Shown here in pieces: positions 8,478 to 54,047 of a stretch of DNA of 64,000 bases (its first letter is position 1; each line of letters opens with the position of its first letter). The notes beneath the pieces are model-generated. The model was given only the letters and a program-made list of their open reading frames with translations, searched no databases and was not told the origin of the DNA. A program made the position numbers and the translations under genes. The stretch is from Chrysemys picta bellii (lineage: Eukaryota): NCBI RefSeq assembly GCF_011386835.1, contig NC_088807.1, positions 26,288,001 through 26,352,000 of the forward strand, given 5' to 3'.

Positions 8478-12535
<4,058 letters not shown>

Positions 12536-15120: not shown

Positions 15121-16989
15121 CCCCTGGCCACTTGGGGGTGTCAGGGACCCCCAGCTGTCACAGATCTGCAGGCCCAGCACAGGAACAGCCCTGGGGGGCC
15201 CTGTCAGTGGGGCAGCCCCCTTGGGGGTCACACTATCCCTGGGATCAGCCACTGGCTCCCCCACCCTCTCGGACCCACCTCGAAGCCTGCAGCCCCCCCG
15301 GGACTGGACCCACAAGGGAACCATGCCTCCCGCTGTCCCGAGCCAGAGTGACTCCCCCGGCAGTGTGAACGCAGGAGGGTTTCCCGAAGGTCCTACACCC
15401 CCAGCTGCTCCCACTTCACACATGGGCCAGGCCTTGGCCACCCCTGGTCTCTGCAAAGCAATCCCCCCCACCCTTAACCGGACGGGGGAAACTGAGGCAC
15501 GCGCAGAATTCATCGGATATCGTATGAAAACTTCCCACTCCACCACCTCAGCTGCCCCCCCCCCCAGCGGGGGGAGCTCTCACACCACAGCCCAGCCCCT
15601 GCACCACCAGCAGCCCTCGGCCTGGGGGGCTTCTGCCCCGCCGGCCCTTTGCCCCACCCCAGGGCCGGGGCAAGGCTGGCTGTGCCCTGCAGGGGGTGGG
15701 GCGAGCCTGGGGGCAGGCAGTGCGGGGACGCTGCATTCACTATCAGACACCCCCCCCCCCCAAGCTCGGGCGAGAACCCAGGAGTCCGACTGAAGGGGAG
15801 GGCCCTGGCCTGCAGAGGACCTGCTCTGTCAGCTGGGGGGGCACAAACCTCAGGGAGCCCCTGGCCCAGCCCCCCCGTTGCACTAGGGCAGGTTTCGCGG
15901 GGGGGGGGGGAGGGGGATTCAGGGGCCCGGCTCTGTTCCCCTCCCCCACCCCGGACCTGCCCCAGAGCGTCCCATGGGCAGTTCCCAGCCTGTCACCCCG
16001 GGGGGCAGCGGGGCCCCCCCATTCCGGAGTCTCTCTCTGGAGATGCCTCGGGCACTAGCCGAACCCCCGAACCTCCCTCCCTGCACCCCTAGCGGCCCGG
16101 ACTCCTGGGTTCTCTCCCTGGCTCTGGGAACGGGGGGGGATTGGTGGTGGGGGGGGCAGTTGGACGGTCCCCTCTGTGTTCCCAGAAACTGCTCCTCCCC
16201 CGCAGCAAGTACTGGGAAATACCCCCGCCCCCGCCCCCCCAGCCCTGCCGGTGCCCCTCACTCCCGACCCGCAGCCCCTGCCCCCCAGCCCTGCCGGTGC
16301 CCCTCACTCCCGACCCGCAGCCCCTGCCCCCCAGCCCTGCCGGTGCCCCCCACTCCCGACCCGCAGCCCCCACCAGCCCAGCTCCGTTTCCAGGCATCGC
16401 CCCTTCCCCAGTCCAACTTCTCCGCCCCCCAGGAATTCCCCAGCCGAGAGGGAGGCTGGGGTCGCGGTGAGGGGATCCCGCTCCCGGAGCAGGGAGAACC
16501 CAGGCGTCCTGGCTCCCAGCCCCCGCCCAGGGAGGGGCCGGGCGCTGGGGGAGGGGCGGCGGAGGGAGGGGTCTGACTCCGGATTATGTCACAGGCTCTG
16601 CAGCCGCAGTGGGGAGCGGAGCGGTTCGGGCGCAGGTAGGGGATGGGATGGGGCTGGGGGGGTTCGGTCCGTCCGGCTGCTCCTGCCCCCCCTCCGGCCC
16701 GGCCCGGCCCCCGCTGGGAGGGGCGAGGGGAACCTGCGGGGATGGGGGCTGAGATGGGGGATGGGAGGGGCAGGGGGGCTGTGGAGGGGGGATGGGTGGG
16801 GCAGGGGGGCTGTGGAGGGGGAGGGGCAGGGCTCAGTGGGGAGAAGCGGGATGTCAGGCTGGGGGCTGTTCAGGGGGGTGAGGGGCCCTGGGGGGCCGGC
16901 TGTGGGGGAGGGGCTGGGCGGGGCTGAGCTCCGTGTCCGTGGGGTGCCTGGGGGGTGTGATGGGGGGTTGTATGCTGAGTTGTGAGCCT

Positions 16990-17350
16990 GGGGTTGTGGG
17001 TCTTGCACGTTGGGTGTGGCCGGTGTGTTGGGTGTGGCAGGTGCTGCGTGTTGTGATTTGTGCTGTATGTTCTGTGTCTGTGGGGTGCATCTTGTGTCTG
17101 GCATGTGGGTTGTGTGTTGTGACGTGTGGGTTGTGTGGTGTTGTGGTGGGTTGCGTGTTGTGACATGTGGGTTGTGTGGTGTTGTGGTGGGTTGTGTGTT
17201 GTGACTTGTGGGTTGTGTGGTGTTGCGTGTTGCGGCCTGTGGGTTGTATGTTGCGTGTTGTGATGGGTGGGTTGTGTGGTGTTGTGCGTTGCGTGTAGTG
17301 TGCTGTGTGTTGTATGTTGCGTGTTGTGGCATGTGGGTTGTGTGTTGCGC
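16990..17350. repeat. GT-rich simple repeat (GTTGTGTGGT-like); duplicate at about 31900-32260
   Basis: Low-complexity G/T tract. Confidence 0.85.
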
Positions 17351-18659
17351 TGCATAGGAGACAGGGCTGGGCGCGGCCTTTGTGTGGGTCGGGGGGGGGA
17401 TCTGGGGCGGTTGGTCGTGTCCTAGAGCCCCCAGCCCCCCAAATCCCCTGGAATCCCCCAGCCCCTAACCCCAGCACACAGCGGGGGGGCAAGAGAGACA
17501 GACCCCCCCCCCGGACACCCCAACTTTGTGTGTGTGCCTGGGGGGGTGTCCCAGGGAGCGGAGCTTGGGAACGGGATGGGGGGGACTCCCAGGCACTGGT
17601 AAATGGGGGGTGAATTCGTGTGGGGGAGAGTCTAGACGGGGGGGGAGAGCTCCTGTCTGTGCCCCTCACTCCCGACCTGCAGCCCCCTGCCAGCCCACCC
17701 TGCCGGTGCCCCTCACTCCCGACCCGCAGCCCCTGCCAGCCCTGCCCAGCCCTGTCCCCCCGCAGCCCTGCCGGTGCCCCTCACTCCCGACCCGCAGCCC
17801 CCTGCCCCCCCCAGCCCTGCCGGTGCCCCTCACTCCCGACCCACAGCCCCTGGCCAGCCCCCCTGACCCCCCAGAGAGTCACTGGGCCTGTCTGCGAGGG
17901 GGTGTCTGAAAGTGAAGGGGGATCCCCCCCAGCCCATCCCCCCCCCCCCCGGGAAGGGTGGGGTCATGGCAGGTGCTTGGGGGAGGGGAATTTCCACATG
18001 AGTTGCAGGCAAATTAGCGGGGGGGGGGGAGCACCTGGCTCTGGGTACGTGTGTGGGGGAAGGGGAGTACACAGGGCCGTGGCCACCCGACCCCCCTCCC
18101 CTCCCAGGGCCGGGAGAGAACCCAGGAGTCCAGGCGGGGGAAGGGGCCTGGCTGCGGCGATGGGCAGGGCTTGGCCCCGTCAGCCCGGTGGGGGGGTTGC
18201 TGTGTGGAGACGGCCCCCCCGGAGCCCAGGGGCCAGGGCCCAGCATGACACACCCCCCCCGACCCCCCCTGGCGCCCGGACTGCCCAGGGCAGAGTCACC
18301 TGTCAGAGCCGGTTAGTGGGAGCCCGGACTCCTGGGTTCTCTGCCGGCTCTGGGCAGGAAGGGGAGTCTGGGGGGTTAGAGTGGGGGTCTGGGAGCCAGG
18401 ACTCCTGCGTTCTCTTCCCGGCTCTGGGAGGGGAGCGGAGGCTGGTGGTCAGAGCGGGGGGGGGGGGGGCTGGGAGCCAGGAGTCCATGGAGCTGGATCC
18501 CCACATCCTGGGTGCCCCGTTTCCAGCCCCCCCCCCACGCTGGCATCCGGCCTGTGCCACTGAGACAAGAACTCGTTTGTGTGGAGGCCAAGAGCCACCC
18601 CACCCCCACACTTCCGCTGTCCGCGGTGGGGCCTGACCCTGGGCCCAGCCCCCACAATG

Positions 18660-19410
18660 GGGCCCTGTTGGGGCAGGGCTGGGCTGGCAGGGGCTGCGGG
18701 TCGGGAGTGAGGGGCACCGGCAGGGCTGGGGGGTGGGGGCTGGGCTGGCGGGGGCTGCGGGTCGGGAGTGAGGGGCGCCGGCGGGGCTGGGGGGCTGGGC
18801 TAGCAGGAGGCTGCGGGTCGGGAGTGAGGGGCGCCGGCGGGGCTGGGGGGCTGGGCTGGCAGGGGCTGCGGGTCGGGAGTGAGGGGCACTGGCGGGGCTG
18901 GGGGGCTGGGCTGGGCTAGCAGGGGGCTGCGGGTCGGGAGTGAGGGGCACTGGCAGGGCGGGGGGGGCAGGGCTGGGCTGGCAGGGGCTGCGGGTCGGGA
19001 GTGAGGGGCGCCGGCAGAGCTGGGGGGGGCAGGGCTGGGCTAGCAGGGGCTGCGGGTCGGGAGTGAGGGGCGCCGGCAGGGCTGGCAGGGGGCTGCGGGT
19101 CGGGAGTGAGGGGCGCCGGCAGAGCTGGGGGGGGCAGGGCTGGGCTAGCAGGGGCTGCGGGTCGGGAGTGAGGGGCGCCGGCAGAGCTGGGGGGGGCAGG
19201 GCTGGGCTAGCAGGGGCTGCGGGTCGGGAGTGAGGGGCACCGGCAGGGCTGGGGGGTGGGGGCTGGGCTGGCGGGGGCTGCGGGTCGGGAGTGAGGGGCG
19301 CCGGCGGGGCTGGGGGGCTGGGCTGGCAGGGGCTGTGGGTCGGGAGTGAGGGGCACCGGCGGGGCTGGGGGGCTGGGCTGGGCTGGCAGGGGCTGTGGGT
19401 CGGGAGTGAG
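18660..19410. repeat. Array of the dispersed GGGCTGCGGGTCGGGAGTGAGGGGC minisatellite
   Basis: Tandem units; the copy B counterpart at about 33575-34090 is shorter. Confidence 0.9.
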
Positions 19411-19686
19411 GGGGACCCTCTCCTCCCCTCCCCTCCCCCACCCTGTCATTCTCTCTGTCTGTTTTCCCTGGTGCCGGGTTTGAATCGGGTCCTTCTGTAA
19501 AAGGGCCGGGGCGGGAGGGGTCCTGGGGGGGCTTCAGAGCCCTTAACTCTTTGCTGTCCGGCTCGGGGAGGGGAGCGGGGGCTGGTGGCGAGAGCGGGGG
19601 GAGGGCAGGAGCCCGGACTCCAGGGTTCTCTCCCTTGCCCCTGGTGGGGTCAAGGTGACTGTGGACCATTATCCCACTGCCTCTTG

Positions 19687-19700
19687 GTTGCCATGGAAAC
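19687..19700. promoter_or_regulatory. Palindromic RFX X-box GTTGCCATGGAAAC upstream of L1CAM (copy at 34366-34379)
   Basis: One mismatch to the canonical GTTGCCATGGCAAC. Confidence 0.5.
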
Positions 19701-20444
19701 GCAGGAAATGCAGCAGCGGTGTGGGGGGGGAGATGCCGGCACAACAGACAACACCTGGCGCTCGCCTCGAAACCCCCCGGCTGCCCTGGATACGCACACG
19801 TCCCCCAACAACCCACAGCCTGTGACATACAACACACCAACACCCCCAGCACTCAACACATCCACAACAACCCATAATACCCAACGCCCCCTGCCCCTGC
19901 AGCCCCGTGCAGCCCACCCACCCTCGGTAACACACAACAGGCTGCAGACGCCCCAGTGCCCCTTGCCTCCCCCCTTCGCTTGCTCCATGGCTCAGTGCCC
20001 GGAGTGTGACCCGCCGAACCCCCCAAACCCCCCCAGCAGCAGGATCCCCACGACGTGGGAAATCCCTAAATCGCCGCAAGCCCCCCCCCGAGACACTGGC
20101 CCAGGGGAGCAGGTGCCAGATCCGGGTGATGGGGAGTGCGTTGTGGGGCCCATCCCCTCTGGGGGGCGCCGGCTCCCCCCCCCCGGCCCCAGGGCAGGGC
20201 CTGGCTGGCTCAGGGGGCGGGGGGGTCAGATGTCTGACACCTGGGGTCTCTCTTCATGCCTGAGGAGTTTACAAGTGGCTGGGGGGGGTTCAGAGACCTT
20301 GGGGACAATCCCCACCCCCCAACATGGCCCAACCGCCCCCCCCTTCTCCCTCTGCTCAGGGGGCCTCGGACAGACGCTGTCAGTTGACGCATTAACTCCC
20401 TGGCTGCTGGAATATTTTTTTTTCTGAGAAACCAACCACAGAAC

Positions 20445-20975
20445 TAGCAGGGGCTGCGGGTCGGGAGTGAGGGGCACCGGCAGGGCTGTCGGGGGGAGGG
20501 GCAGGGCTGGGCTAGCAGGGGCTGCGGGTCGGGAGTGAGGGGCGCCGGCGGGGCTGGGGGGCTGGGCTGGGCTAGCAGGGGCTGCGGGTCGGGAGTGAGG
20601 GGCGCCGGCGGGGCTGGGGGGCAGGGCTGGGCTAGCAGGGGCTGTGGGTCGGGAGTGAGGGGCGCCGGCGGGGCTGGGGGGCAGGGCTGGGCTAGCAGGG
20701 GCTGCGGGTCGGGAGTGAGGGGCGCCGGCGGGGCTGGGCTAGCAGGGGGCTGTGGGTCGGGAGTGAGGGGCGCCGGCGGGGCTGGGGGGCAGGGCTGGGC
20801 TAGCAGGGGCTGCGGGTCGGGAGTGAGGGGCGCCGGCGGGGCTGCGGGGGGGCAGGGCTGGGCTAGCAGGGGCTGCAGGTTGGGAGTGAGGGGCACCGGC
20901 AGGACTTGGGCGGGGGGGCAGGGCTGGGCCAGCAGGGGCTGCGGGTTGGGAGTGAGGGGCACCGGCAAGGCTGGG
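20445..20975. repeat. Array of the GGGCTGCGGGTCGGGAGTGAGGGGC minisatellite
   Basis: Tandem units; copy B counterpart at about 35120-35650. Confidence 0.9.
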
Positions 20976-21895
20976 GGCTCCCCCCCTCCAGTTTCTGCTC
21001 CCCCCCGTACTCTGGTTCCATCTGCCTCTGGGACATGGTGGCTCACAGGGGAGGTGCCCGGCGCTGGTGACCACAACGGTGCCAACTCCAAGCAGACAAT
21101 GACGGAAACCCTGCGACCGACTCGTCTGGGCCCAGATCTTTGGGACCAGCTGCCTCCTCCCACTCCCCTCCCAGAGCTGGGGAGAGAACCCAGGCGTCCG
21201 GGCTCCCACCCCGCCCTGCTCTAACCCACCAGCTCTCCTCTCAGATAAGAATCCCTGACTTGATAACAAATTTACTTTGCTATCGTAGGGCTGGATAGGA
21301 GCCAGTGCCCCCTGGAGGGCACAGGCCCCAGCCCCATTCCCTGCCCCCCTCAGCCAGCCAGTCCCCGCCCTGGGGCTGAATGTTTAATAACAGCACAGTT
21401 TGTACAGGTGGCAGGGGCTGCGGGTCGGGAGTGAGGGGCACCGGCAGGGCTGGGGGGGCAGGGGCTGCGGGTCGGGAGTGAGGGGCGCTGGCAGGGCTGG
21501 GGGGGCCAGGGCCAGGCTCGTGGGGGCTGTGGGTCGGGAGTGAGGAGCATCTTTCCTCTCCTCTCTCTCCTCCTCCCTATTAATAATTCATACCCCCTCC
21601 CCCGTCGCCGGCACTTTTCCATCTGTTCCCGTGTCCGTCCGTCCACCCGTCTGTCTCCTGCTGGGGGAGGGGAGGGGCTGGGGGGATCCTGCTGGGTTGA
21701 CAAGATAAGCCCCTTAGCCTGGTAATTGCCCCTGGGGAGGTTGGGGGGGTTCTCACTGTGCAGGAATTTGGGGGAGGGGCGGCGCTCCACCCCAGAGGTG
21801 GTCGCATGGATCTCGCTCAGTGATGGTGCTTCTCCCCCAGCCAGGTGCAGGGAGCGACCCGCGGCGCCCCCCAGCCAGCGCCGCCCGGATTGAGG

Positions 21896-24800
21896 ATGGC
21901 TCCCACGCGGGGCCAGCTGCTCCAGCTCTGGCCCCTGCTGTTCGGCCTGGCCGAGGCCCTCACCATCCCCAAGGAGTGTGAGTAGCTGGGGGGGGTCGGG
22001 TCCGTCCCCCGCTTGAGCCAGAAGTGGGGCAGTCCAGGTGTCCATGGATGGTGGATCCCTCCCATTACCCTGCCATGGTACAGTCCAAGTTTCAACCCAT
22101 AGCTACAATCAGCACCACGGACCGGGCTCTGGGTGTTGCAATGGGCTGTAGCTACAGTCAGCACCAGGGACAGGGCTCCGGGTGTTGCATTGGGCTGTAG
22201 CTACAGTCAGCACCAGGGACAGGGCTCCGGGTGTTGCAATGGGCTGTAGCTACAGTCAGCATCAGGGACAGGGCCCCGGGTATTGCATTGGACTGAAGCT
22301 ACAGTCAGCACCACGGACAGGACTCCGGGTGTTGCAATGGGCTGTAGCTACAGTCAGCACCAGGGACAGGGCCCCGGGTATTGCATTGGGCTGTAGCTAC
22401 AGTCAGCACCAGGGACAGGGCCCCGGGTATTGCATTGGGCTGTAGCTACAGTCAGCACCACGGACCGGGCTCCGGGGGTTGCATTGGGCTGTAGCTACAG
22501 TCAGCACCACGGACCAGGCTCCGGGTGTTGCAATGGGCTGTAGCTACAGTCAGCACCAGGGACAGGGCCCTGGGTGTTGCATTGGGCTGTAGCTAGTCAG
22601 CACCACGGACAGGGCTCTGGGTGTTGCATTGGGCTGTAGCTACAGGCACCACCAGGGACAGGGCTCCAGGTGTTGCAATGGGCTGTAGCTACAGTCAGCA
22701 CCAGGGACAGGGCCCCAGGTGTTGCATTGGGCTGAAGATACAGTCAGCACCACGGACCGGGCTACAGGTGTTGCATTGGGCTGAAGCTACAGTCAGCACC
22801 ATGGACAGGGTTCCGGGTGTTGCATTGGGCTGAAGCTACAGTCAGCACCATGGACAGGGCTCCGGGTGTTGCAAAGGGCTGCAGCTATAGTCAGCACCAC
22901 AGACCGGGCTCAGGGTGTTGCATTGGGCTGTAGGTACAGTTCACCCCACGGACAGGGCTCTGGGTGTTGCATTGGGGTGTAGCTACATTCAGCACCATGG
23001 ACAGGGCTCCGGGTGTTGCATTGGGCTGAAGCTACAGTCAGCACCACGGACAGGGCTCCGGGTGTTGCAATGGGCTGTAGCTACAGTCAGCACCACGGAC
23101 AGGGCTCCGGGTGTTGCATTGGGCTGTAGCTACAGTCAGCACCACGGACAGGGCTCCGGGTGTTGCATTGGGCTGTAGCTACAGTCAGCACCGCGGACTG
23201 GGCTCAGGGTGTTGCACTGGGCTGTATCCGCCCGTGCCAAACCCATGGGTGGGGGGAGTTTCTGCAGGGGAGGAATCCATGGATCTGATCCGGGGGTGGT
23301 TTTGCACATTCACTCTGGCACACTTTGCACGGTTCTTCATGCCGCAGTGCACAATCATTTTCTGTGCCTTGCTTGCTGTAACACCCGCTCATGTACAATC
23401 CCCCCTCGCTCCCCGTGAGCGCCCAGCTCCACCTGCCCTTCGCATGTGCGGTCGCGCACTCACCCTTCCCCACCCCCTCCGCTCACTCTTGTGCATGCTC
23501 ACCCTCACCAAGCACCCTCCAGGCCTTGTGCCAGCTCACCTGGCACACTTGAGCACTCCCAGCTCTCTTGCACACTTTGGCACACCCTCCAGTGCACACT
23601 CATGTCTCCCAGCACATCCCGCCTTGCAACCGTGGACATGCTCTGGCCAGTTTGCCTTGCACACTTCTGCACAAGCGCAGTGCACAACTTGCATGCTCAC
23701 ACCCACACAGCCCTCGGTCCCACTCCCGGGGCCCCCACGTGGGACGCCAGCTAACGTCTCTCTGTGTCTCTCCCCTCTGCTACCCGGCGCCACAGACGAG
23801 ATGCACAACCGTGAGTCCTGGGGTGAAACGGGGTATCCGGGGATTCTGGGCACACTCAGGCTGCGGCTTTGCACACTCACCCCCTTTTCCCAAGAACCCC
23901 CAGGGCCGTTTCGGATCCATCAGGAGAGAGATTGGGGGGGCCGTGGTGGGGAGGGGAAATGGGGGGGGGTCTAGGGGGAAGTTTGGGAGAGTTCAGGGGA
24001 GGGGGAATTGGGGCACTCTGGGGAAGCTTGGGGTGGGACGGGGGGCAGAGCAGGTTGCTGGGTTCTCAGTCTCTGTAACAGCCCCCCCGCGCTCCCCCAG
24101 TGCGGCAGCCCCCTGAGATGATGGAGCAGCCGGCGGAGAAGCTGGTCGTGTTCCCCAGCGATGACATTGTGCTGCGGTGTGAGGCCACCGGGACACCCCC
24201 CCTCGAGTGAGTACGGCCCCTCTCTTCCCCACCGCCGCCTCCCTCCCCTCCCCGCCCCCCAGGGCCCCCAACCCCCCGGTGCCGCCCCGAGCTCCTCCCC
24301 CTCCCCCCACAGGTTCCGCTGGACGAAGGATGGGCGCAGGTTCGACCCGCGCCGGGAGGCCGGGGTGACGGTCGTCGAGGGCTCGGGGACCCTGTACATC
24401 AACAACAGCAATGCGGGGCGGCACCAGGGCATCTATCGGTGCTACGCCAGCAACGACCTGGGCACGGCCATGGGGCCGGAGATCCACGTCATCGCCGAGA
24501 GTAAGTGACCCCCTCCCCGCCGTGGGCAGCGCCCCTAACTCCTGACCCGCAGCCCCCCGAACCCAGCCGTTCCCCCCCCATGCATCCGGCGCCCCTCACT
24601 CCCGACCCGCAGCCCCCCGAACCTAGCCCTTCCCCCCCCCATGCATCCGGCGCCCCTCACTCCTGACCCGCAGCCCCCCGAACCCAGCCCTTCCCCCCCC
24701 CCCTGCATCTGGCGCCCCTCACTCCCGACCCGCAGTCCCCCAAACCCAGCCCTTCCCCCCCCATGCATCTGGCGCCCCTCACTCCCGACCCGCAGCCCCC

Positions 24801-27800
24801 TGAACCCAGCCCTTCCCCCCCCATGAATCTGGCGCCCCTCACTCCCGACCCGCAGCCCCCCGAACCCAGCCTTGGGCCCCCCCCCCACTTTTACCTGCAG
24901 GTCTCCCCAGAGCTCAGCCAATTGCTCCTGTTTCCACAGCAACCATTTCCATGGCAGCGAGGTGTCAGGGTGATGTAATTGCTCCTCTCCATCAGCCCCT
25001 CCCCCACCCCCTCCCCCACCCTTGGCTGTAGCCTGAGACCCCCTCCCCCCCCCCCCCAGCCTCCCCAGGGAGCAAAGGCCGGGGAAGTGGAGACGCCCTG
25101 TGGAGAATCCACCCTGCCCCCCGCAGCCCTGCTGGTGCCCCTCACTCCCGACCCCCAGCCCCCCAGCCTGGCCCTGCCCACCAGCCCCGCCGGTGCCCCT
25201 CACTCCCGACCCGCAGCCCCTGCCAGCCCAGCCCAGCCCCCCAGCCCCGCCCGTGCCCCTCACTCCCGACCCGCAGCCCCCCAGCCTGGCCCTGCCCCCC
25301 CATTGTTGATTGAACCCCCCCTCCCTGCTGCAGGCACCCCCCAGTGGCCCAAGGAGAAGGTTTCCCCATTGGAGGTGGAGGAGGGGGAGTCTGTCGTCCT
25401 GCCCTGCAACCCCCCCGCCAGTGCCATGCCCCCCAAAATCTACTGGCTGAACAGCCGTGAGTATCCGCTGCCAGGAGCGGGGCCCGGGGCCTGTCCCCTC
25501 TGGGGGCACCAGCTCCCATCCAGCCCCACAGCGGGGACTCAGGGGCACGGGGAGTGGGGCTGGGGGGGGCGCCGGCTCCCCCCTGACCCAGGGCGGGGAC
25601 TGGCTGGCTCAGGGGCGCGGGGAGTGGGGCTGGGGGGGGCGCCGGCTCCCCCCTGACCCAGGGCGGGGACTGGCTGGTTCAGGGGCGCGAGGAGTGGGGT
25701 TGGGGGGGGCGCCGGCTCCCCCCTGACCCAGGGCGGGGACTGGCTGGTTCAGGGGCGCGGGGAGTGGGGCTGGGGGGGGCACCGGCTCCCTCCTGACCCA
25801 GGGCGGGGACTGGCTGGTTCAGGGGCGCGGGGAGTGGGGCTGGGGGGGGGCGCCGGCTCCCCCCTGACCCAGGGCGGGGACTGGCTGGCTCAGGGGCGCG
25901 AGTAGTGGGGTTGGGGGGGGCGCCGGCTCCCCCCTGACCCAGGGCGGGGACTGGCTGGCTCAGGGGGGCAGGGAGTGGGGCTGGGGGGGGCGCCGGCTCC
26001 CCCCGACCCAGGGCGGGGACTGGCTGGTTCAGGGGCGCGAGGAGTGGGGTTGGGGGGGGGCGCCGGCTCCCCCCTGACCCAGGGCGGGGACTGGCCGGCG
26101 CAGGGGGGCTCAGGGGGTGGGGAATGGGGCAAGGGCTGCGGGGAGCAGGGGGCGGGTTGAGCTCCGGTTTAACCCCTCGCTGCCCGGCAGGCATCGTACA
26201 CATCGCGCAGGACGAGCGGGTCAGCATGGGGCAGGACGGGTACTTGTACTTTGCCAACGTCCGGCGCTCGGACAGTCACCCCGACTACATCTGCCACGCC
26301 CACTACCTGGGCCCCCGCACCATCATCCAGAAAGAGCCGATCGAGCTGCGGGTCCGACCCAGTGAGTGGTGTGGGGGCCCCTCGGACCTGGGGGAGGGAC
26401 CTGCGGGGGGGGGGGCAGCCCTGAGTGGGGACCCTTGTGCCGGGAGGTATAAAGGCTTGGGGGGGGGTCGATTTTCAGCGCAGCCCCAGGCATTGGAACC
26501 CAGGCATCCGGGTGTATCTCCCAGGTGACCCCCCCCCCCCAATCCATCCCTCGGTGTCGGGGGGCCACTCCTCCCCCCGATCTCTTTGCTATTTCTGCCC
26601 CCCACCTCTCAGCAGGGATCCCCCCCCACCAATTTCTCGGCATCCGTTGGAGCACTCCTAGGGCTGCGCTATCCCTTTGGGGCCCCCCCGTGGCTCCTGC
26701 GCCCTCTGGGGGGTGGACTGGGGTCCTGGGGACCCCCCAGGTTTGGGGGTATCCGGCCAAATTGAGCCTGGTACATTGGGGGCCATTGCCCCCCCTCCCC
26801 ACCCCTCTGATGGACAGAGGGGGGTACACAGGGGCACATGGGGATGGACGGGGCAGTGTCACGGACTCACAGATCGTGCCCATGCTTGGCCCCGTGCGGT
26901 CCCTGGGGCGAACCCCGGTCAGAGGGACAGCCCTTCTCGGGGTCCCCTCTGTCCCAGGGGTCAGGCCCCTCCACCTCCTGGAGCCGCACCTCTCTGAGCC
27001 TTAGCACGTCTGTCTCTGCCATGGGCCCCCCAGGGAGTCCCCTCGCTCTGGGGCCCCCCATCTCCCCGCTCCCAGAGTCAATAATGCCCCCCCCCCGTTC
27101 TCTAGCCCGGAGGGACACTCAGCCAGCGTCGCACAGGAGGGTTATCGAGCGTCTGACCCCAGCACAGGAAACTCTCCGGCCTCAGGCCTGGCCCCCCTCA
27201 GCCCAGCACATCCCAGTCTCCCCTGCATCCAGGGGGGCTCTGCCTGCTCCCCCTCTCCAGCCCCGACCCCCCTGCTCCCCAGCTGGGCATCTGATACCCC
27301 CAGCCCCAAGCCAGGGAAACAGGGTCGCCTGGGCCTCCTCTCCCCTCTTCTGTCCTCTGGCCCCCAGCAACACCCAGGGAAACTGAGTCCCACCCCCTCA
27401 GCATGCAAACCATTGGAAACCTCCCCCCACTGCTTGGTGCTGACCCCCTCCCTGTCTCCCCTGCAGCCAACTCAGTGAAGTTTCGCAAGCCCCGGATGAT
27501 GGTACCGCCCGGGGAGAGCAGCTCCCACGTCGCCCTGCGGGGTTCCAGCCTGGCCCTGGAGTGCATCGCGGAGGGCTTGTGAGTGGGGCGGGCGCTTGGG
27601 GGGCACTGGGGGGCTGCGGGTTGAGGGCTATGGGGGTGGGTGTTACTGGGGCTGTGGGGGGGCCTGTCTGACCCCCCAGCCCCATGCCAGCCCCGCTCTG
27701 CCCCCAGCCCCACGCCCACTGTGGAGTGGATCCGTCTGAACGGCCCCCTGCCCGCGGAGCGCACGGCCCTGGAGAACTCCCAGAAAACTCTGCGGATCCG

Positions 27801-30591
27801 GGACGTGCTGGAGGAGGACGACGGGGAGTATCAGTGTATCGCCCGCAACACGCGGGGCACCGCCCGCCACATCTACACCGTCACCGTGGAAGGTACCGGC
27901 GGGGGCTGCGAGTCGGGAGTGAGGGGCACCCGTAGGGCTGGGGGGCAGGGCTGGGAGGCAGGGGGCTGCGGGTCGGGAGTGAGGGGCACTGGCAGAGCTC
28001 GGGGGCTGCGGGTCAGGAGTGGGGGGCACCAGTAGGGCTGTGGGGGCAGGGCCGAGCCGGCAGGGGCCGCGGGTCAGGAGTGAGGGGCTAGGGGGCAGGG
28101 GCTGTGGGTCAGGAGTGAGGGGTACCAGCAGAGCTGGGGGGCAGGGCCAGGCCAGCAGGGGGCTGTGGGTCAGGAGTGAGGGGCACCAGTAGGGCTGGGG
28201 GGCAGGGCCGAGCCGGCAGGGGCCGCGGGTCAGGAGTGAGGGGCTAGGGGGCAGGGGCTGTGGGTCAGGAGTGAGGGGTACCAGCAGAGCTGGGGGGCAG
28301 GGCCAGGCCAGCAGGGGGCTGTGGGTCAGGAGTGAGGGGCACCAGTAGGGCTGGGGGGCAGGGCCGAGCCGGCAGGGGCCGCGGGTCAGGAGTGAGGGGC
28401 TAGGGGGCAGGGGCTGTGGGTCAGGAGTGAGGGGTACCAGCAGAGCTGGGGGGCAGGGCCGAGCCGGCAGGGGCCGCGGGTCAGGAGTGAGGGGCACCGG
28501 CTCTCACCCCCCTTCCCCCCCCAGCCGCCCCCTACTGGGCACAGCAGCCCCACAGCCGGGTGTACGGCCCCGGGGAGAACGTTCGGCTCGACTGCTCCGT
28601 CTACGGGAAACCCAAACCCCGGGTGTCCTGGAGGGTCAACGGCGTCCCCTGGGGAGGTGAGAACGGGGGGAGGGGCTGGGCGGGACACGGGGTGGGGAGG
28701 GGGCGGGATGTGGGAGCGGGGACAGTGGGTGGGGCTGGGCAGTGGGCGGGGCCGGTCAGTGGGTGGGGGCGGGGTCGGTGGGCGGGGCCAGATAGTGGGT
28801 GGGACAGTGGGCGGGTTGGGGCCGGGGCAGTGGGCGGGGTTGGCAGGGACAGTGGGCGGGGGCCCAGCAGTGGGCGTGGTAATGGGCGGAGCAGTGGGCG
28901 GGGGTGGGGCAGTGGGCGGGGCCAGGTAATGGGCGGAGCAGTGGGCGGGGGTGGGGCAGTGGGCGGGACACGGGGCGTCTCTGCTGCCCCCCCAGCCGCA
29001 TCTCGCCCCCAGAGCTGGCGCCGGACTCGGCGCGGATGCTGCGCTCGGGGGCCCTGATCCTCACTCAGGTGCAGCCCAACGACTCGCTGGTGACGCAGTG
29101 CGAGGCCGTGAACCGCCACGGCCGCTTGCTGGCCAACGCCTACATCTACGTCATCCGTGAGTGCCTGGTGACCGCCGCCCCGGCAACCACCCCTCATCCC
29201 CCCTAGCGACCGCTCCCTAGCAACCATCAATCATCCCCCAGCAACCACCACCCCGGCGACCGCCGCCTTGGCAACCAGCCCTAGCGATCGCCCACTAGCA
29301 ACTGTCAATCATCCCCCTAGCAACCACCACCCCCAGCAACCAACCACTGGCAACTGGGCCTAGGTTACAGCTTCCTCCTCCCCCTACCAGCCACCCCCGA
29401 GCAACCACCACCCCTGGCAACCAGCCCAGCCCTGGCAACCGTCCCCCAGCAACCAGCCCTTGGCAACCATCCCATCTCTGGCACCCTCTCCCCCAAGGGC
29501 AGCTCCCAGGGGCCCATCCTGCCAGGCATCCCCTGGGTGGGTGGGTTTGGGGGTGCAGGGGCGGGGATGGGTCCAGAGCCCCCCTTACCTCCCCCCCCTG
29601 CAGAGCTCCCGGCGAAGATCCTGACCCCGGACGAGCAGCGCTACGCCGTGGTGGAGAACCAGACGGCGTCCCTGGACTGCCAGGCCTTCGGGGCGCCCAT
29701 GCCCAGCGTGGAGTGGTGAGGGGACCCCCCGTGTGCGCGCTCCCTGCCCCCCCCTGCACTGCTGCCCCCAGACACCACCTCCTTCCCTCTCACTCGCCCC
29801 CACTGTGTGCCCCCGGCGCTGCGAGCTTCCCCGCAGCAGTGCCCTGGGCAGGGTGCCAAGTGCCCCTGACACGCCCCCGCTGGCAGGTTCACCGAGCGGA
29901 TGGAGCCGGCCCTGCAGGACGAACGCGCCTTCGTCCACACCAACGGCACCTTGCACCTGAGCCGGGCCCAGCGCCAGGACACCGGCGCCTACGTCTGCCT
30001 CGCCCAGAACGACCAGAACAACGTCACCATCAACGCCTGGCTTGAGGTCAAAGGTGGGGCCCCCGCGCCCCCCAGCATGCCGCGGGGCGGGCCGGGAAGG
30101 GAGGGGCTGAGGGGGGAGCAGGGCATGCTGGGAAGGGAGGGGCTGAGGGGTGGAGTTTGGCGGAAAGGGAGGGGCTGAGGGGGGAGCGGGGCAGAAAGGG
30201 AGGGGCCGAGGGGAGAGCAGAGAGGGCCGAGAAGGGAGGGGCTGGGGGCGCAGCAGGGCATGCTGGGAAGGGAGGGGCCGAGGGGGGGAGCGGGGTGGTC
30301 CAGGAGGGGCTGAGGGGGGAGCGGGCCGGGAAGGGAGGGGCTGGGGGCGCAGCAGGGCATGCTGGGAAGGGAGGCAGCCCGGGCGCTGCCCCCTGTCACC
30401 CCCAGTCCCGTCCCGTCCTGTCCCGTCCCAGGCGCGACGCGGATCGTGCTGGGACCCCAAAGTGCTGTGGTGAAGAAATTCAGCAACGTGACCTTCCAGT
30501 GCCGGGCACGGTTCGACGAGACGCTGCCGGAGCGCGGAGTCGAGTGGCGGCGGGACGGGCGCCTCATCCAGGAGTCGGACGACAGCGACAA
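21896..30591 (+). CDS. L1CAM: L1 cell adhesion molecule, copy A: signal peptide through the first half of Ig6, 13 coding exons, cut by the gap
   Basis: Exons 21896-21977, 23796-23810, 24101-24206, 24313-24500, 25334-25456, 26191-26361, 27467-27578, 27708-27892, 28525-28656, 29013-29156, 29604-29715, 29887-30053, 30432-30591. The joined frame is open. It contains [32 protein letters not shown] and [12 protein letters not shown], and most exon lengths match human L1CAM as I recall them. Confidence 0.93.
22098..23226 (+). promoter_or_regulatory. Tandem array of 23 x 49-bp units carrying RE1/NRSE (REST-binding) motifs, copy A
   Basis: Unit GGGCTGTAGCTACAGTCAGCACCACGGACAGGGCTCCGGGTGTTGCATT. By my count 14 of 23 units have a perfect TCAGCACCnnGGACAG core. 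Confidence 0.85.
23796..23810 (+). CDS. L1CAM: L1CAM 15-nt micro-exon (YEMHN), equivalent to the mammalian neural YEGHH exon
   Basis: cacag|ACGAGATGCACAACC|gtgagt, phase 1-1 and in frame between the signal-peptide exon and the Ig1 exon. Confidence 0.85.
25540..26100. repeat. About 70-bp VNTR in L1CAM intron 5, 8 units in copy A
   Basis: CCCTGACCCAGGGCGGGGACTGGCTGG recurs every 70-71 bp. Confidence 0.92.
27893..28500. repeat. Minisatellite in L1CAM intron 8 (GGGTCAGGAGTGAGGGG variants)
   Basis: Tandem variant units; the copy B array at about 43285-43790 is shorter. Confidence 0.88.
29180..29470. repeat. GCAAC-rich degenerate repeat in L1CAM intron 10 (RFX half-site-like)
   Basis: About 13 copies of (T/C)(A/G)GCAAC(C/T) in about 290 bp; duplicate at about 44460-44750. 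Confidence 0.7.
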
Positions 30592-30594
30592 GTG

Positions 30595-31094
30595 NNNNNN
30601 NNNNNNNNNNNNNNNNNNNNNNNNNNNNNNNNNNNNNNNNNNNNNNNNNNNNNNNNNNNNNNNNNNNNNNNNNNNNNNNNNNNNNNNNNNNNNNNNNNNN
30701 NNNNNNNNNNNNNNNNNNNNNNNNNNNNNNNNNNNNNNNNNNNNNNNNNNNNNNNNNNNNNNNNNNNNNNNNNNNNNNNNNNNNNNNNNNNNNNNNNNNN
30801 NNNNNNNNNNNNNNNNNNNNNNNNNNNNNNNNNNNNNNNNNNNNNNNNNNNNNNNNNNNNNNNNNNNNNNNNNNNNNNNNNNNNNNNNNNNNNNNNNNNN
30901 NNNNNNNNNNNNNNNNNNNNNNNNNNNNNNNNNNNNNNNNNNNNNNNNNNNNNNNNNNNNNNNNNNNNNNNNNNNNNNNNNNNNNNNNNNNNNNNNNNNN
31001 NNNNNNNNNNNNNNNNNNNNNNNNNNNNNNNNNNNNNNNNNNNNNNNNNNNNNNNNNNNNNNNNNNNNNNNNNNNNNNNNNNNNNNNNNNNNNN
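30595..31094. other. Assembly gap (500 N, fixed size so true length unknown)
   Basis: Run of exactly 500 N. Confidence 0.99.
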
Positions 31095-34000
31095 GATTGG
31101 TGGTGGGGGGGGCAGTTGGACGGTCCCCTCTGTGTTCCCAGAAACTGCTCCTCCCCCGCAGCAAGTACTGGGAAATACCCCCGCCCCCGCCCCCCCAGCC
31201 CTGCCGGTGCCCCTCACTCCCGACCCGCAGCCCCTGCCCCCCAGCCCTGCCGGTGCCCCCCACTCCCGACCCGCAGCCCCCACCAGCCCAGCTCCGTTTC
31301 CAGGCATCGCCCCTTCCCCAGTCCAACTTCTCCGCCCCCCAGGAATTCCCCAGCCGAGAGGGAGGCTGGGGTCGCGGTGAGGGGATCCCGCTCCCGGAGC
31401 AGGGAGAACCCAGGCGTCCTGGCTCCCAGCCCCCGCCCAGGGAGGGGCCGGGCGCTGGGGGAGGGGCGGCGGAGGGAGGGGTCTGACTCCGGATTATGTC
31501 ACAGGCTCTGCAGCCGCAGTGGGGAGCGGAGCGGTTCGGGCGCAGGTAGGGGATGGGATGGGGCTGGGGGGGTTCGGTCCGTCCGGCTGCTCCTGCCCCC
31601 CCTCCGGCCCGGCCCGGCCCCCGCTGGGAGGGGCGAGGGGAACCTGCGGGGATGGGGGCTGAGATGGGGGATGGGAGGGGCAGGGGGGCTGTGGAGGGGG
31701 GATGGGTGGGGCAGGGGGGCTGTGGAGGGGGAGGGGCAGGGCTCAGTGGGGAGAAGCGGGATGTCAGGCTGGGGGCTGTTCAGGGGGGTGAGGGGCCCTG
31801 GGGGGCCGGCTGTGGGGGAGGGGCTGGGCGGGGCTGAGCTCCGTGTCCGTGGGGTGCCTGGGGGGTGTGATGGGGGGTTGTATGCTGAGTTGTGAGCCTG
31901 GGGTTGTGGGTCTTGCACGTTGGGTGTGGCCGGTGTGTTGGGTGTGGCAGGTGCTGCGTGTTGTGATTTGTGCTGTATGTTCTGTGTCTGTGGGGTGCAT
32001 CTTGTGTCTGGCATGTGGGTTGTGTGTTGTGACGTGTGGGTTGTGTGGTGTTGTGGTGGGTTGCGTGTTGTGACATGTGGGTTGTGTGGTGTTGTGGTGG
32101 GTTGTGTGTTGTGACTTGTGGGTTGTGTGGTGTTGCGTGTTGCGGCCTGTGGGTTGTATGTTGCGTGTTGTGATGGGTGGGTTGTGTGGTGTTGTGCGTT
32201 GCGTGTAGTGTGCTGTGTGTTGTATGTTGCGTGTTGTGGCATGTGGGTTGTGTGTTGCGCTGCATAGGAGACAGGGCTGGGCGCGGCCTTTGTGTGGGTC
32301 GGGGGGGGGATCTGGGGCGGTTGGTCGTGTCCTAGAGCCCCCAGCCCCCCAAATCCCCTGGAATCCCCCAGCCCCTAACCCCAGCACACAGCGGGGGGGC
32401 AAGAGAGACAGACCCCCCCCCCGGACACCCCAACTTTGTGTGTGTGCCTGGGGGGGTGTCCAGGGAGCGGAGCTTGGGAACGGGATGGGGGGGACTCCCA
32501 GGCACTGGTAAATGGGGGGTGAATTCGTGTGGGGGAGAGTCTAGACGGGGGGGGAGAGCTCCTGTCTGTGCCCCTCACTCCCGACCTGCAGCCCCCTGCC
32601 AGCCCACCCTGCCGGTGCCCCTCACTCCCGACCCGCAGCCCCTGCCAGCCCTGCCCAGCCCTGTCCCCCCGCAGCCCTGCCGGTGCCCCTCACTCCCGAC
32701 CCGCAGCCCCCTGCCCCCCCCAGCCCTGCCGGTGCCCCTCACTCCCGACCCACAGCCCCTGGCCAGCCCCCCTGACCCCCAAGAGAGTCACTGGGCCTGT
32801 CTGCGAGGGGGTGTCTGAAAGTGAAGGGGGATCCCCCCCAGCCCATCCCCCCCCCCCCGGGAAGGGTGGGGTCATGGCAGGTGCTTGGGGGAGGGGAATT
32901 TCCACATGAGTTGCAGGCAAATTAGCGGGGGGGGGGGGAGCACCTGGCTCTGGGTACGTGTGTGGGGGAAGGGGAGTACACAGGGCCGTGGCCACCCGAC
33001 CCCCCTCCCCTCCCAGGGCCGGGAGAGAACCCAGGAGTCCAGGCGGGGGAAGGGGCCTGGCTGCGGCGATGGGCAGGGCTTGGCCCCGTCAGCCCGGTGG
33101 GGGGGTTGCTGTGTGGAGACGGCCCCCCCGGAGCCCAGGGGCCAGGGCCCAGCATGACACACCCCCCCCGACCCCCCCTGGCGCCCGGACTGCCCAGGGC
33201 AGAGTCACCTGTCAGAGCCGGTTAGTGGGAGCCCGGACTCCTGGGTTCTCTGCCGGCTCTGGGCAGGAAGGGGAGTCTGGGGGGTTAGAGTGGGGGTCTG
33301 GGAGCCAGGACTCCTGCGTTCTCTTCCCGGCTCTGGGAGGGGAGCGGAGGCTGGTGGTCAGAGCGGGGGGGGGGGGGCTGGGAGCCAGGAGTCCATGGAG
33401 CTGGATCCCCACATCCTGGGTGCCCCGTTTCCAGCCCCCCCCCCCACGCTGGCATCCGGCCTGTGCCACTGAGACAAGAACTCGTTTGTGTGGAGGCCAA
33501 GAGCCACCCCACCCCCACACTTCCGCTGTCCGCGGTGGGGCCTGACCCTGGGCCCAGCCCCCACAATGGGGCCCTGTTGGGGCAGGGCTGGGCTGGCAGG
33601 GGCTGCGGGTCGGGGAGTGAGGGGCGCCGGCAGGGCTGGGGGGTGGGGGCTGGGCTGGCGGGGGCTGCGGGTCGGGAGTGAGGGGCGCCGGCGGGGCTGG
33701 GGGGCTGGGCTAGCAGGAGGCTGCGGGTCGGGAGTGAGGGGCGCCGGCGGGGCTGGGGGCTGGGCTGGCAGGGGCTGCGGGTCGGGAGTGAGGGGCACTG
33801 GCGGGGCTGGGGGGCTGGGCTGGGCTAGCAGGGGGCTGCGGGTCGGGAGTGAGGGGCACTGGCAGGGCGGGGGGGGCAGGGCTGGGCTGGCAGGGGCTGC
33901 GGGTCGGGAGTGAGGGGCACCGGCAGGGCTGGGGGGTGGGGGCTGGGCTGGCGGGGGCTGCGGGTCGGGAGTGAGGGGCGCCGGCGGGGCTGGGGGGCTG

Positions 34001-36616
34001 GGCTGGCAGGGGCTGTGGGTCGGGAGTGAGGGGCACCGGCGGGGCTGGGGGGCTGGGCTGGGCTGGCAGGGGCTGTGGGTCGGGAGTGAGGGGGACCCTC
34101 TCCTCCCCTCCCCTCCCCCACCCTGTCATTCTCTCTGTCTGTTTTCCCTGGTGCCGGGTTTGAATCGGGTCCTTCTGTAAAAGGGCCGGGGCGGGAGGGG
34201 TCCTGGGGGGGCTTCAGAGCCCTTAACTCTTTGCTGTCCGGCTCGGGAGGGGAGCGGGGGCTGGTGGCGAGAGCGGGGGGAGGGCAGGAGCCCGGACTCC
34301 AGGGTTCTCTCCCTTGCCCCTGGTGGGGTCAAGGTGACTGTGGACCATTATCCCACTGCCTCTTGGTTGCCATGGAAACGCAGGAAATGCAGCAGCGGTG
34401 TGGGGGGGAGATGCCGGCACAACAGACAACACCTGGCGCTCGCCTCGAAACCCCCCGTCTGCCCCGGATACGCACACGTCCCCCAACAACCCACAGCCTG
34501 TGACATACAACACACCAACACCCCCAGCACTCAACACATCCACAACAACCCATAACACCCAACGCCCCCTGCCCCTGCAGCCCCGTGCAGCCCACCCACC
34601 CTCGGTAACACACAACAGGCTGCAGACGCCCCAGTGCCCCTTGCCTCCCCCCTTCGCTTGCTCCATGGCTCAGTGCCCGGAGTGTGACCCGCCGAACCCC
34701 CCAAACGCCCCCAGCAGCAGGATCCCCACGACGTGGGAAATCCCTAAATCGCCGCAAGCCCCCCCCCGAGACACTGGCCCAGGGGAGCAGGTGCCAGATC
34801 CGGGTGATGGGAGTGCGTTGTGGGGCCCATCCCCTCTGGGGGGCGCCGGCTCCCCCCCCCGGCCCCAGGGCAGGGCCTGGCTGGCTCAGGGGGCGGGGGG
34901 GTCAGATGTCTGACACCTGGGGTCTCTCTTCATGCCTGAGGAGTTTACAAGTGGCTGGGGGGGGTTCAGAGACCTTGGGACAATCCCCACCCCCCAACAT
35001 GGCCCAACCGCCCCCCCCTTCTCCCTCTGCTCAGGGGGCCTCGGACAGACGCTGTCAGTTGACGCATTAACTCCCTGGCTGCTGGAATATTTTTTTTTCT
35101 GAGAAACCAACCACAGAACTAGCAGGGGCTGCGGGTCGGGAGTGAGGGGCACCGGCAGGGCTGTCGGGGGGAGGGGCAGGGCTGGGCTAGCAGGGGCTGC
35201 GGGTCGGGAGTGAGGGGCGCCGGCGGGGCTGGGGGGCTGGGCTGGGCTAGCAGGGCTGCGGGTCGGGAGTGAGGGGCGCCGGCGGGGCTGGGGGGCAGGG
35301 CTGGGCTAGCAGGGGCTGTGGGTCGGGAGTGAGGGGCGCCGGCGGGGCTGGGGGGCAGGGCTGGGCTAGCAGGGCTGCGGGTCGGGAGTGAGGGGCGCCG
35401 GCGGGGCTGGGCTAGCAGGGGGCTGTGGGTCGGGAGTGAGGGGCGCCGGCGGGGCTGGGGGGCAGGGCTGGGCTAGCAGGGGCTGCGGGTCGGGAGTGAG
35501 GGGCGCCGGCGGGGCTGCGGGGGGGCAGGGCTGGGCTAGCAGGGGCTGCAGGTTGGGAGTGAGGGGCACCGGCAGGACTTGGGCGGGGGGGCAGGGCTGG
35601 GCCAGCAGGGGCTGCGGGTTGGGAGTGAGGGGCACCGGCAAGGCTGGGGGCTCCCCCCCCTCCAGTTTCTGCTCCCCCCCGTACTCTGGTTCCATCTGCC
35701 TCTGGGACATGGTGGCTCACAGGGGAGGTGCCCGGCGCTGGTGACCACAACGGTGCCAACTCCAAGCAGACAATGACGGAAACCCTGCGACCGACTCGTC
35801 TGGGCCCAGATCTTTGGGACCAGCTGCCTCCTCCCACTCCCCTCCCAGAGCTGGGGAGAGAACCCAGGCGTCCGGGCTCCCACCCCGCCCTGCTCTAACC
35901 CACCAGCTCTCCTCTCAGATAAGAATCCCTGACTTGATAACAAATTTACTTTGCTATCGTAGGGCTGGATAGGAGCCAGCGCCCCCTGGAGGGCACAGGC
36001 CCCAGCCCCATTCCCTGCCCCCCTCAGCCAGCCAGTCCCCGCCCTGGGGCTGAATGTTTAATAACAGCACAGTTTGTACAGGTGGCAGGGGCTGCGGGTC
36101 GGGAGTGAGGGGCACCGGCAGGGCTGGGGGGGCAGGGGCTGCGGGTCGGGAGTGAGGGGCGCTGGCAGGGCTGGGCTAGCAGGGGCTGTGGGTCGGGAGT
36201 GAGGGGCACCGGCAGGGCTGGGGGGGCCAGGGCCGGGCTGGCAGGGGCTGTGGGTCGGGAGTGAGGAGCATCTTTCCTCTCCTCTCTCTCCTCCTCCCTA
36301 TTAATAATTCATACCCCCTCCCCCGTCGCCGGCACTTTTCCATCTGTTCCCGTGTCCGTCCGTCCACCCGTCTGTCTCCTGCTGGGGGAGGGGAGGGGCT
36401 GGGGGGATCCTGCTGGGTTGACAAGATAAGCCCCTTAGCCTGGTAATTGCCCCTGGGGAGGTTGGGGGGGTTCTCACTGTGCAGGAATTTGGGGGAGGGG
36501 CGGCGCTCCACCCCAGAGGTGGTCGCATGGATCTCGCTCAGTGATGGTGCTTCTCCCCCAGCCAGGTGCAGGGAGCGACCCGCGGCGCCCCCCAGCCAGC
36601 GCCGCCCGGATTGAGG

Positions 36617-53521: not shown

Positions 53522-53646
53522 GTGAGACCCCCTGAACCCCCAAAACCCACTGTGACCCCCAGCCCCCATTCCCCACTGAACCCCCAGCTCCCCTGACCCT
53601 CCAGAGCCCCACACACCCCTCAACAGCTCCCAGCCCCCAAGGACGG

Positions 53647-53954
53647 TGTCACGGGATGTGGGGGGGGGCCGGGCCCCTGTCGGGGGGGGGAGTCGGGGCC
53701 TGCACCCCACTTCCTGCGAGTCCCTGCAAAGGGTTATTCGCCGCCAGGGACACGGGGGAGCCAGAGCTTGTAGGGACAGAGACCAGGACCCCTCAGCTGG
53801 GTCCATCCTGGGGGTGGGGAGCCAGACCCTGGTTCTGGGCCTCCCCCCCCCCCCCCCCGTCTCCCCAGCCAGCTCCAATCTGACCCCCACCACCCCCCAG
53901 CCCCTCCTCCGGCCCCCCCAGCCCCTCCTCCGGCCTTTGTCCAGTGTCCTGGCC
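53647..53954 (-). mobile_element. Partial, GC-drifted LTR of the Gypsy LTR family, followed by the start of another element and the gap
   Basis: Starts TGTCACGGGA and shares GGCCTGCACCCCACTTCCTGCGAGTCCC and the following ~250 bp with 58468-58778. Confidence 0.7.
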
Positions 53955-54047
53955 TGACGGTGCTGCCCGTGGGAGCCGGGTGAGGTCACTGACTCAGGGT
54001 GAACTGCAAACAGACCGGGGCAGACAAACCCCAAACGCTGGTGGATC

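Follow-up and report, generated by a model that had tools for sequence, protein, structure and literature searches.

Background

In the mouse L1 gene, the neuron-restrictive silencer element (NRSE), also called repressor element 1 (RE1), is located in the second intron, "immediately downstream of exon 2", which is the exon containing the ATG, and it responds to REST; deletion of this NRSE leads to precocious and ectopic non-neural expression in transgenic mouse embryos (PMC2132545). Here we describe what appears to be an expanded form of this element in Chrysemys picta bellii: a minisatellite of 23 tandem units, each with an RE1/NRSE-like sequence, in an intron of a probable L1CAM gene. The array is contained in a stretch of 64,000 nucleotides (NCBI RefSeq assembly GCF_011386835.1, contig NC_088807.1, positions 26,288,001 to 26,352,000, forward strand), which we call the window and in which all positions below are counted from the first letter. 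It shares with the mammalian L1CAM NRSE the intron (after the ATG exon and before the micro-exon), the closeness to the exon and the sense orientation; the mammalian gene has one or two sites that bind REST, whereas the turtle array has 23 units. Our preferred reading, to which we give a probability of about 0.6, derives the array, by growth of a minisatellite, from a 49-bp intronic segment of L1CAM that held the gene's own RE1/NRSE, the site through which REST silences the gene outside the nervous system.

Several systems with more than one RE1 have been described, and the closest of them belong to the same gene family. In its first intron, the avian orthologue of L1, chicken Ng-CAM, carries a contiguous run of five NRSEs (Kallunki et al. 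1995, as related in PMC2132545), and according to the same secondary account these five elements act as a silencer of a reporter in fibroblasts, an effect absent from neuroblastoma cells. As far as that account goes, the chicken gene resembles the turtle gene in being a sauropsid L1 orthologue with a run of adjacent NRSEs in a 5' intron, and differs from it in having five copies rather than 23 and in having them in the first intron, upstream of the ATG exon, rather than in the next one. In human, L1CAM and SNAP25 have tandem RE1 pairs, at which the recruitment of REST exceeds that at single sites (Bruce et al. 2004, as cited in PMC1557810), and the coordinates in the supplement of PMC1794552, the only part of that listing used here, place the two L1CAM sites on the same (minus) strand, 42 bp from start to start. 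The human pairs, which include those of SNAP25, L1CAM and KCNN4 (Johnson et al. 2006, PMC1557810), are arranged head to tail within 100 bp, and local tandem duplication has been proposed as their origin and the recruitment of REST at low REST levels as their role (PMC1557810). The turtle array is likewise head to tail, and differs from the human pairs, whose spacing is variable, in its regular 49-bp period and its 23 units.

The number of RE1s can also grow in other ways. RE1-like sequences have been spread by transposable elements (PMC1557810), and these dispersed copies, like the units of the array, owe their number to repeat-generating processes; they are scattered and many of them are not bound by REST, whereas the turtle copies are local and situated at a classic target gene. 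The variable number tandem repeat (VNTR) at the internal promoter of MIR137 is another tandem repeat over a REST-bound region, with allele-dependent reporter activity (PMC4393679), but its 15-bp units lie beside a predicted REST site and we found no statement in that paper of a 21-bp RE1 within the units. Finally, synthetic 2xNRSE cassettes have demonstrated that multimerised canonical NRSEs act as a portable REST-dependent silencer that restricts expression to neurons in a non-mammalian vertebrate (PMC3529185); these are engineered, with two copies of perfect consensus, and the turtle array is natural, with 23 units. Multi-copy RE1s at an L1 gene are thus already established, and the regular 23-unit minisatellite is an extreme form of them, of which we found no description in the literature searched.

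Results

The array and its unit

Tandem Repeats Finder reports the array (array A) with a period of 49 bp, 23.0 copies, 90% matches, 0% indels and a score of 1755, in agreement with the 23 units of 49 bp given in a preliminary description of this DNA. Minisatellites are defined by head-to-tail units of 10–100 bp with variant units interspersed among them, and the period and copy number of array A place it in this class. Each unit is composed of a sense-strand RE1/NRSE-like 21-mer, with the consensus GTCAGCACCACGGACAGGGCT, followed by a 28-bp spacer. When the array was split in register, the exact sequence TCAGCACCNNGGACAG was found in 14 of the 23 units, which is the number previously described; with at most one mismatch, this sequence has 40 matches in the window versus 0.06 expected from dinucleotide shuffles. 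The base following GGACAG is G in all array units, also as described. Other features of the unit are less regular than had been thought. The palindrome TGTAGCTACA, earlier said to be present in every unit, is intact in only 14 of the 23. The inverted CCAAT box attributed to many units (CATTGG) is indeed present in 15, but 6 others have CAATGG instead, and the T/A position within this box is among the most variable of the 49-bp unit; a reading of the box as an NF-Y/CCAAT site was rejected because the motif position is polymorphic. The left half of the RE1, CAGCACC, is present in each unit together with its near reverse complement, GGTGTTG, 17 bp downstream.

Array A fills 62% of an intron of 1818 bp. 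It begins 122 bp into the intron, close to the 120 bp or so estimated previously, ends 569 bp before the micro-exon, and is oriented as the gene is, on the + strand. The minus strand, on which the human pair lies, is the strand of the human L1CAM gene. On either side of the array, the flanking parts of the intron (21981-22099 and 23227-23795) have no counterpart in the window other than their duplicate copy, and a comparison within the window gave no sign of a transposable element in them. Neither the 49-bp unit nor the flanks of the array resemble other repeats in the window, and the unit is confined to two syntenic arrays, array A and the second array (array B) described below. A 31-bp piece of the unit had no exact match in a metagenome collection.

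The units as RE1 sequences

We compared the units with three descriptions of the element: the canonical NRSE 21-mer TTCAGCACCACGGACAGCGCC (PMC3529185); a degenerate consensus of 17 bp, NTYAGMRCCNNRGMSAG, based on 32 bona fide sites with the "lesser-conserved" last four bases omitted (PMC4430910); and the RE1 core, positions 2-9 and 12-17, defined by Wu and Xie from 38 validated sites (PMC1794552). Perfect matches to NTYAGMRCCNNRGMSAG are found in 14 of the 23 units of array A and in 15 of the 23 of array B, and 11 further units have one mismatch. All 29 perfect matches of the window are inside the two arrays, with 0 elsewhere. The canonical 2-bp linker between the half-sites is kept in all units. 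When only the core is counted, 29 of the 46 units (~63%) have zero mismatches and 39 have no more than one; in array A the number of core mismatches per unit is 0 in 14 units, 1 in 5, 2 in 3 and 4 in 1, and in array B the exact core is present in 15 of 23 units. The fixed deviations of GTCAGCACCACGGACAGGGCT from TTCAGCACCACGGACAGCGCC are at positions 1, 18 and 21, all of which are non-core. Conserved mammalian NRSEs that end in GGACAGGGCC or GGCCAGGGCC exist (PMC1794552, Table 1), so conserved sites can accommodate a G at position 18. In Xenopus the NRSE consensus serves without change (PMC4430910), and the canonical 21-mer is functional in zebrafish (PMC3529185). Our comparison supports the earlier proposal that the units are RE1s, in the sense that they carry an RE1/NRSE sequence of canonical spacing, whose core positions are all intact in 14 of the array A units and in 15 of those of array B.

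A dispersed minisatellite of the window with a 74-bp unit, containing …CCCAGAGCCNGGGAGAG…, also fits the 17-bp NRSE consensus except at a single base, the T of position 2. This repeat, which differs from the 49-bp unit, is found on the minus strand at 10786-11517, 16112-16128 and 57948-58038. It probably resembles an RE1 by chance or through a transposon-type origin, a kind of look-alike against which PMC1557810 warns.

A second array in a duplicated block

The preliminary description gave one array, array A, and missed array B, which also has 23 units (Table 1). The two arrays are found in the two copies of a duplicated block of 14.4 kb, separated by a 500-N assembly gap, with copy 1 ending at the last base before the gap and copy 2 starting at the first base after it. 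In unique DNA the copies differ by 0-0.4% by substitution, and their minisatellites differ in length and sequence.

Table 1. Positions of the arrays, the duplicated block and the 5' exons of the host gene within the 64-kb window
Feature	Positions	Strand	Basis
Array A, 23 head-to-tail units of 49 bp	22100-23226	+	Tandem Repeats Finder and unit table
Array B, second 23-unit version	36820-37944	+	Motif search, unit split, Tandem Repeats Finder score 1751
Duplicated block, copy 1 (L1CAM 5' region through Ig5 exons), ending at the last base before the gap	16185-30594		Self-BLAST, MAFFT
500-N assembly gap between the block copies	30595-31094		
Duplicated block, copy 2, starting at the first base after the gap and running on into the remaining gene	31095-45874		Self-BLAST, MAFFT
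ATG exon of L1CAM, coding part (signal peptide and first base of the next codon)	21896-21977	+	Sequence, translation
Intron between ATG exon and micro-exon, 1818 bp	21978-23795	+	Splice sites read from the sequence
15-bp micro-exon, ACGAGATGCACAACC	23796-23810	+	Polypyrimidine tract, CAG acceptor, GTGAGT donor, reading frame
First Ig1 exon	24101-24206	+	tblastn of Mauremys mutica protein P0151, 90% identity; weak Pfam Ig_3 match
Second Ig1 exon (FRWTKDG…)	24313-24500	+	89% identity to turtle protein P0151

To judge from their sequences, the two copies of the block are most probably haplotypes, or overlapping contig ends, left unmerged around the gap; a very recent real tandem duplication with its junction hidden in the gap would look the same. 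Two differences between the copies fall close together in the second Ig1 exon, where copy 2 has an extra G in a G-run (at about 39079, versus 24361-24364 in copy 1) that would shift the frame, and where one synonymous GAT/GAC difference is found near this extra G. The extra G has the look of a sequencing error in a homopolymer, or else of a defect in copy 2 itself. The copy of the micro-exon, at 38514-38528, differs by one CpG transition (ACGAG… versus ACAAG…), which changes YEMHN to YKMHN.

The two arrays are near-identical in their first 7 and last 3 units. In the middle there are three unit gains or losses each way, which cancel out, and 83 in-register base differences. Among the 46 units there are 37 distinct unit types, of which 6 are common to both arrays. 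The interior of the array diverges by 6-9% between the two versions, while the 569 bp downstream of it are 100% identical. Differences of this kind are typical of minisatellite turnover. The unit count is 23 in array A and 23 in array B, a comparison between sequences whose status as alleles or paralogues is itself deduced, and the earlier suggestion of a copy-number-tunable platform finds no backing in it. For comparison, a 70-bp minisatellite located in an L1CAM intron farther downstream numbers 8.1 copies at 25538-26106 in copy 1 of the block and 19.1 at 40167-41508 in copy 2.

Signs of constraint on the copies

We looked at how the changes are distributed along the unit. Variability along the unit peaks at the second base of the RE1 linker, which is off the unit consensus in 23 of the 46 units. 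The 14 RE1 positions (2-9 and 12-17) together have 24 changes, versus a mean of 40 over the 49 rotations of the same mask; the RE1 register is the fifth lowest, with fewer changes than 44 of the 48 other registers. This low count is suggestive of constraint at the RE1 positions. Overall the evidence for selection on the array copies is weak, because the units are not independent, the count of distinct variants is flat, the A of GGACAG has been lost 10 times and many of the variants are CpG transitions.

The host gene

The case for L1CAM rests on the exon structure around the array and on the protein matches of the exons that follow it. The ATG exon has its ATG at 21896, a GTGAGT donor at 21978 and a likely acceptor AG at 21839-21840. 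It ends in phase 1 with a T, which completes a Tyr codon when joined to the micro-exon and a Leu codon when joined to the next exon. The micro-exon encodes YEMHN and starts the following Leu codon, linking the phase-1 end of the ATG exon in frame to the Ig1 exon, so that the joined reading is …IPKE-YEMHN-LRQPPE… and skipping gives Leu. This 15-bp arrangement is that of the neural micro-exon of L1CAM, and from the structure of that gene we infer that the turtle exon is its counterpart.

Exons on the plus strand encode the immunoglobulin (Ig) domains Ig1, Ig3, Ig4 and Ig5 and, after copy 2, Ig6 and FN3 domains as far as ~53.5 kb. Four exons of the window are collinear, at 60-95% identity, with an unnamed Ig protein from Mauremys mutica (P0151), which was the only database relative reached when the Ig1 exon was used as the query of a word-indexed protein search. 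In the same kind of search, no match was obtained for an intronic open reading frame (ORF) beside the array or for the FN3-1 exon within a 444-aa ORF. Among solved structures, the second Ig1 exon is collinear with neurofascin residues 47-105 (E 6e-11), although titin and DSCAM score slightly higher overall, and the best match of the Ig3 exon is neurofascin, also with collinear residues. Neurofascin is the only L1-family member with Ig structures in the PDB, and no L1CAM entry was found among the PDB matches for the Ig1 and Ig3 exons. When the Ig3 exon was run in an exhaustive representative search, the matches were all giant multi-Ig proteins, with no L1CAM among them, and ten candidates of ~1,200-1,300 aa were not of the L1 family.

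The genomic neighborhood gives further information. Exons of IDH3G, the gene for the gamma subunit of isocitrate dehydrogenase [NAD], are present upstream on the minus strand at about 3742-6380, head to head with L1CAM and ~15 kb from the ATG exon; the call is based on the gamma subunit being the best match (E 2e-24, versus 4e-17 for beta). In human, IDH3G is linked to L1CAM in Xq28. Taken by its exons, the host gene is supported as an L1-family cell adhesion molecule gene with an L1CAM-type micro-exon. This agrees with the earlier assignment of the array to the L1CAM intron after the start-codon exon, the same intron as that of the validated mouse L1 NRSE (PMC2132545).

The 3' end of the gene is less complete. 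The last recognisable FN3 exon is at ~53.4-53.5 kb, and exons for the transmembrane and cytoplasmic parts of L1CAM were not found in six-frame translations of 53533-56700 searched with a few L1CAM tail motifs. Because a second 500-N gap (54048-54547) follows the last FN3 exon, the assembly may lack the 3' portion of the gene. A claim of PDZD4 as the downstream neighbor was dropped; the ORF at 56764-57102 has no Pfam match.

Repeats of the window

Minisatellites with a period of at least 10 make up 35% of the window (277 Tandem Repeats Finder rows), and its G+C content is 68%. A motif family, …GCCCCTCACTCCCGACCCGCAGCCCC…, recurs in many of these arrays and on both strands. Transposable elements are represented near the end of the window by a CR1-like long interspersed element (LINE) with a near-intact, stop-free reverse-transcriptase ORF of 780 aa (58862-61201, minus strand), which fits a reptile, and by ORFs of a long terminal repeat (LTR)-type element (61691-64000, minus strand) with an integrase zinc-binding domain and a gag-like SCAN domain plus zinc knuckle, which run off the end of the window.

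Discussion

If the array did grow from the gene's own RE1/NRSE, REST would occupy many of its sites at once in non-neural cells, which is feasible because a 21-bp site every 49 bp leaves room for simultaneous occupancy. The result would be a high-avidity silencer that recruits co-repressors beside the promoter and the first coding exons and that tolerates the loss of single units. The amplification most likely would have taken place by replication slippage or unequal exchange in a minisatellite-rich region, and would not require selection for more sites; the hairpin potential of the units may have favored slippage, and the expansion of the array was probably a by-product of local repeat instability. 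The preliminary description had derived the array from an ancestral single silencer, having taken mammalian L1CAM to have a single NRSE. The human gene has a tandem RE1 pair (PMC1557810, PMC1794552), and this pair together with the five NRSEs of chicken means that a single ancestral site is not established. The array could further be a selected, lineage-specific "super-silencer", in which the length is held constant while the units are reshuffled and in which the density of REST sites sets the threshold at which L1CAM is switched on. The basis for a constant length is that both versions have 23 units, versus 8 and 19 in the neighboring array, and we regard this extension of the preferred reading as improbable.

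A number of observations weigh against the preferred reading, whose chief rival is that the RE1 segment was amplified by chance as a passenger of a minisatellite, with extra copies that add nothing and that drift and decay, either because silencing is saturated by one or two sites or because most copies are covered by nucleosomes or methylated. The high minisatellite content of the window and the presence of other minisatellites as large as this one, of 1.1-1.6 kb at 40167-41508 and 51622-53187, indicate that this region builds arrays readily, and therefore an array over any given element is not surprising. A core base has been lost in 17 of the 46 units (37%), in 10 of them at the A of GGACAG. 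Many unit variants are CpG transitions (CCGGG to CTGGG or CCAGG, CACGG to CATGG), as expected of methylated and unconstrained DNA. When distinct variants are counted there is no clear constraint, with 10 over the 14 RE1 positions versus 27 over the 33 others, and the non-independence of the units is a caveat on all counts of changes. With regard to REST binding, sites that fitted the consensus but fell under the cut-off of a position-specific scoring matrix (PSSM) mostly failed to compete for REST in electrophoretic mobility shift assays (Johnson et al., PMC1557810). That matrix, with a cut-off of 0.91, gives weight to position 1 and to the 3' end (PMC1557810), which is where the deviations of the turtle unit fall. 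In human T cells, REST bound 30% of the canonical RE1s embedded in repeats versus 71% of those outside repeats (PMC2687797), most repeat-embedded sites thus being unbound. Against a passenger origin, 29 intact cores persist despite the 6-9% divergence of the interior, the most variable single position is the free base of the RE1 linker, and the five chicken NRSEs silence together (in the account of PMC2132545); the equal unit number of the two versions, set against 8.1 and 19.1 copies in the neighboring 70-bp array, points the same way, although it is one comparison only. We consider the passenger explanation somewhat unlikely.

Two further explanations do not involve REST acting at the gene's ancestral site, and both seem to us very unlikely. 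The array might act as an intronic RNA, structured or bound by protein, that affects the inclusion of the micro-exon, or through some other factor that recognises the palindrome TGTAGCTACA or the box CATTGG. It is situated just upstream of an alternatively spliced micro-exon, 569 bp away, its units combine CAGCACC with a near reverse complement, and the RNA of three units folds at -79 kcal/mol, with z-scores of -7.1 relative to plain shuffles and -2.8 relative to a null that preserves the repeats, in which 3 of 300 shuffles were as good. Yet single units, folded as DNA, do no better than shuffles, and the repeat matched no Rfam family. Only 14 of the 23 units have an intact palindrome, and the CATTGG/CAATGG site ranks among the most variable; no known splicing-factor motif was recognised in the unit, in which the RE1 is the only long, specific known motif. 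It would be equally surprising if the array belonged to a dispersed satellite, or to an internal repeat of a transposable element, present at many loci and unrelated to the ancestral NRSE. Transposable elements are known to spread RE1-like sequences (PMC1557810), and CR1-like and LTR-type elements are present in the window, but within these 64 kb the unit is found only in the two syntenic arrays and is unlike the other repeats, the metagenome collection held no exact match, and the array is located where the validated NRSE of mammalian L1 lies, oriented as the gene is.

As a textbook target of REST, L1CAM is known to differ in its number of REST sites, with one or two in mammals and five in chicken; the 23 units seen here would be the extreme of this series. 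As a naturally multimerised silencer, the array would raise the question of whether the number of REST sites alters the strength of silencing or the REST level at which the gene is switched on, and it would bear also on how a long zinc-finger motif survives in fast-evolving repeats and on how regulatory elements may be built by minisatellite processes. If the copies are inert, the locus would instead show clearly how a functional site can be multiplied as a passenger where reptile DNA is GC-rich and prone to repeats. If a "super-silencer" has been selected in this lineage, it would offer a natural system for studying the dosage of transcription-factor sites.

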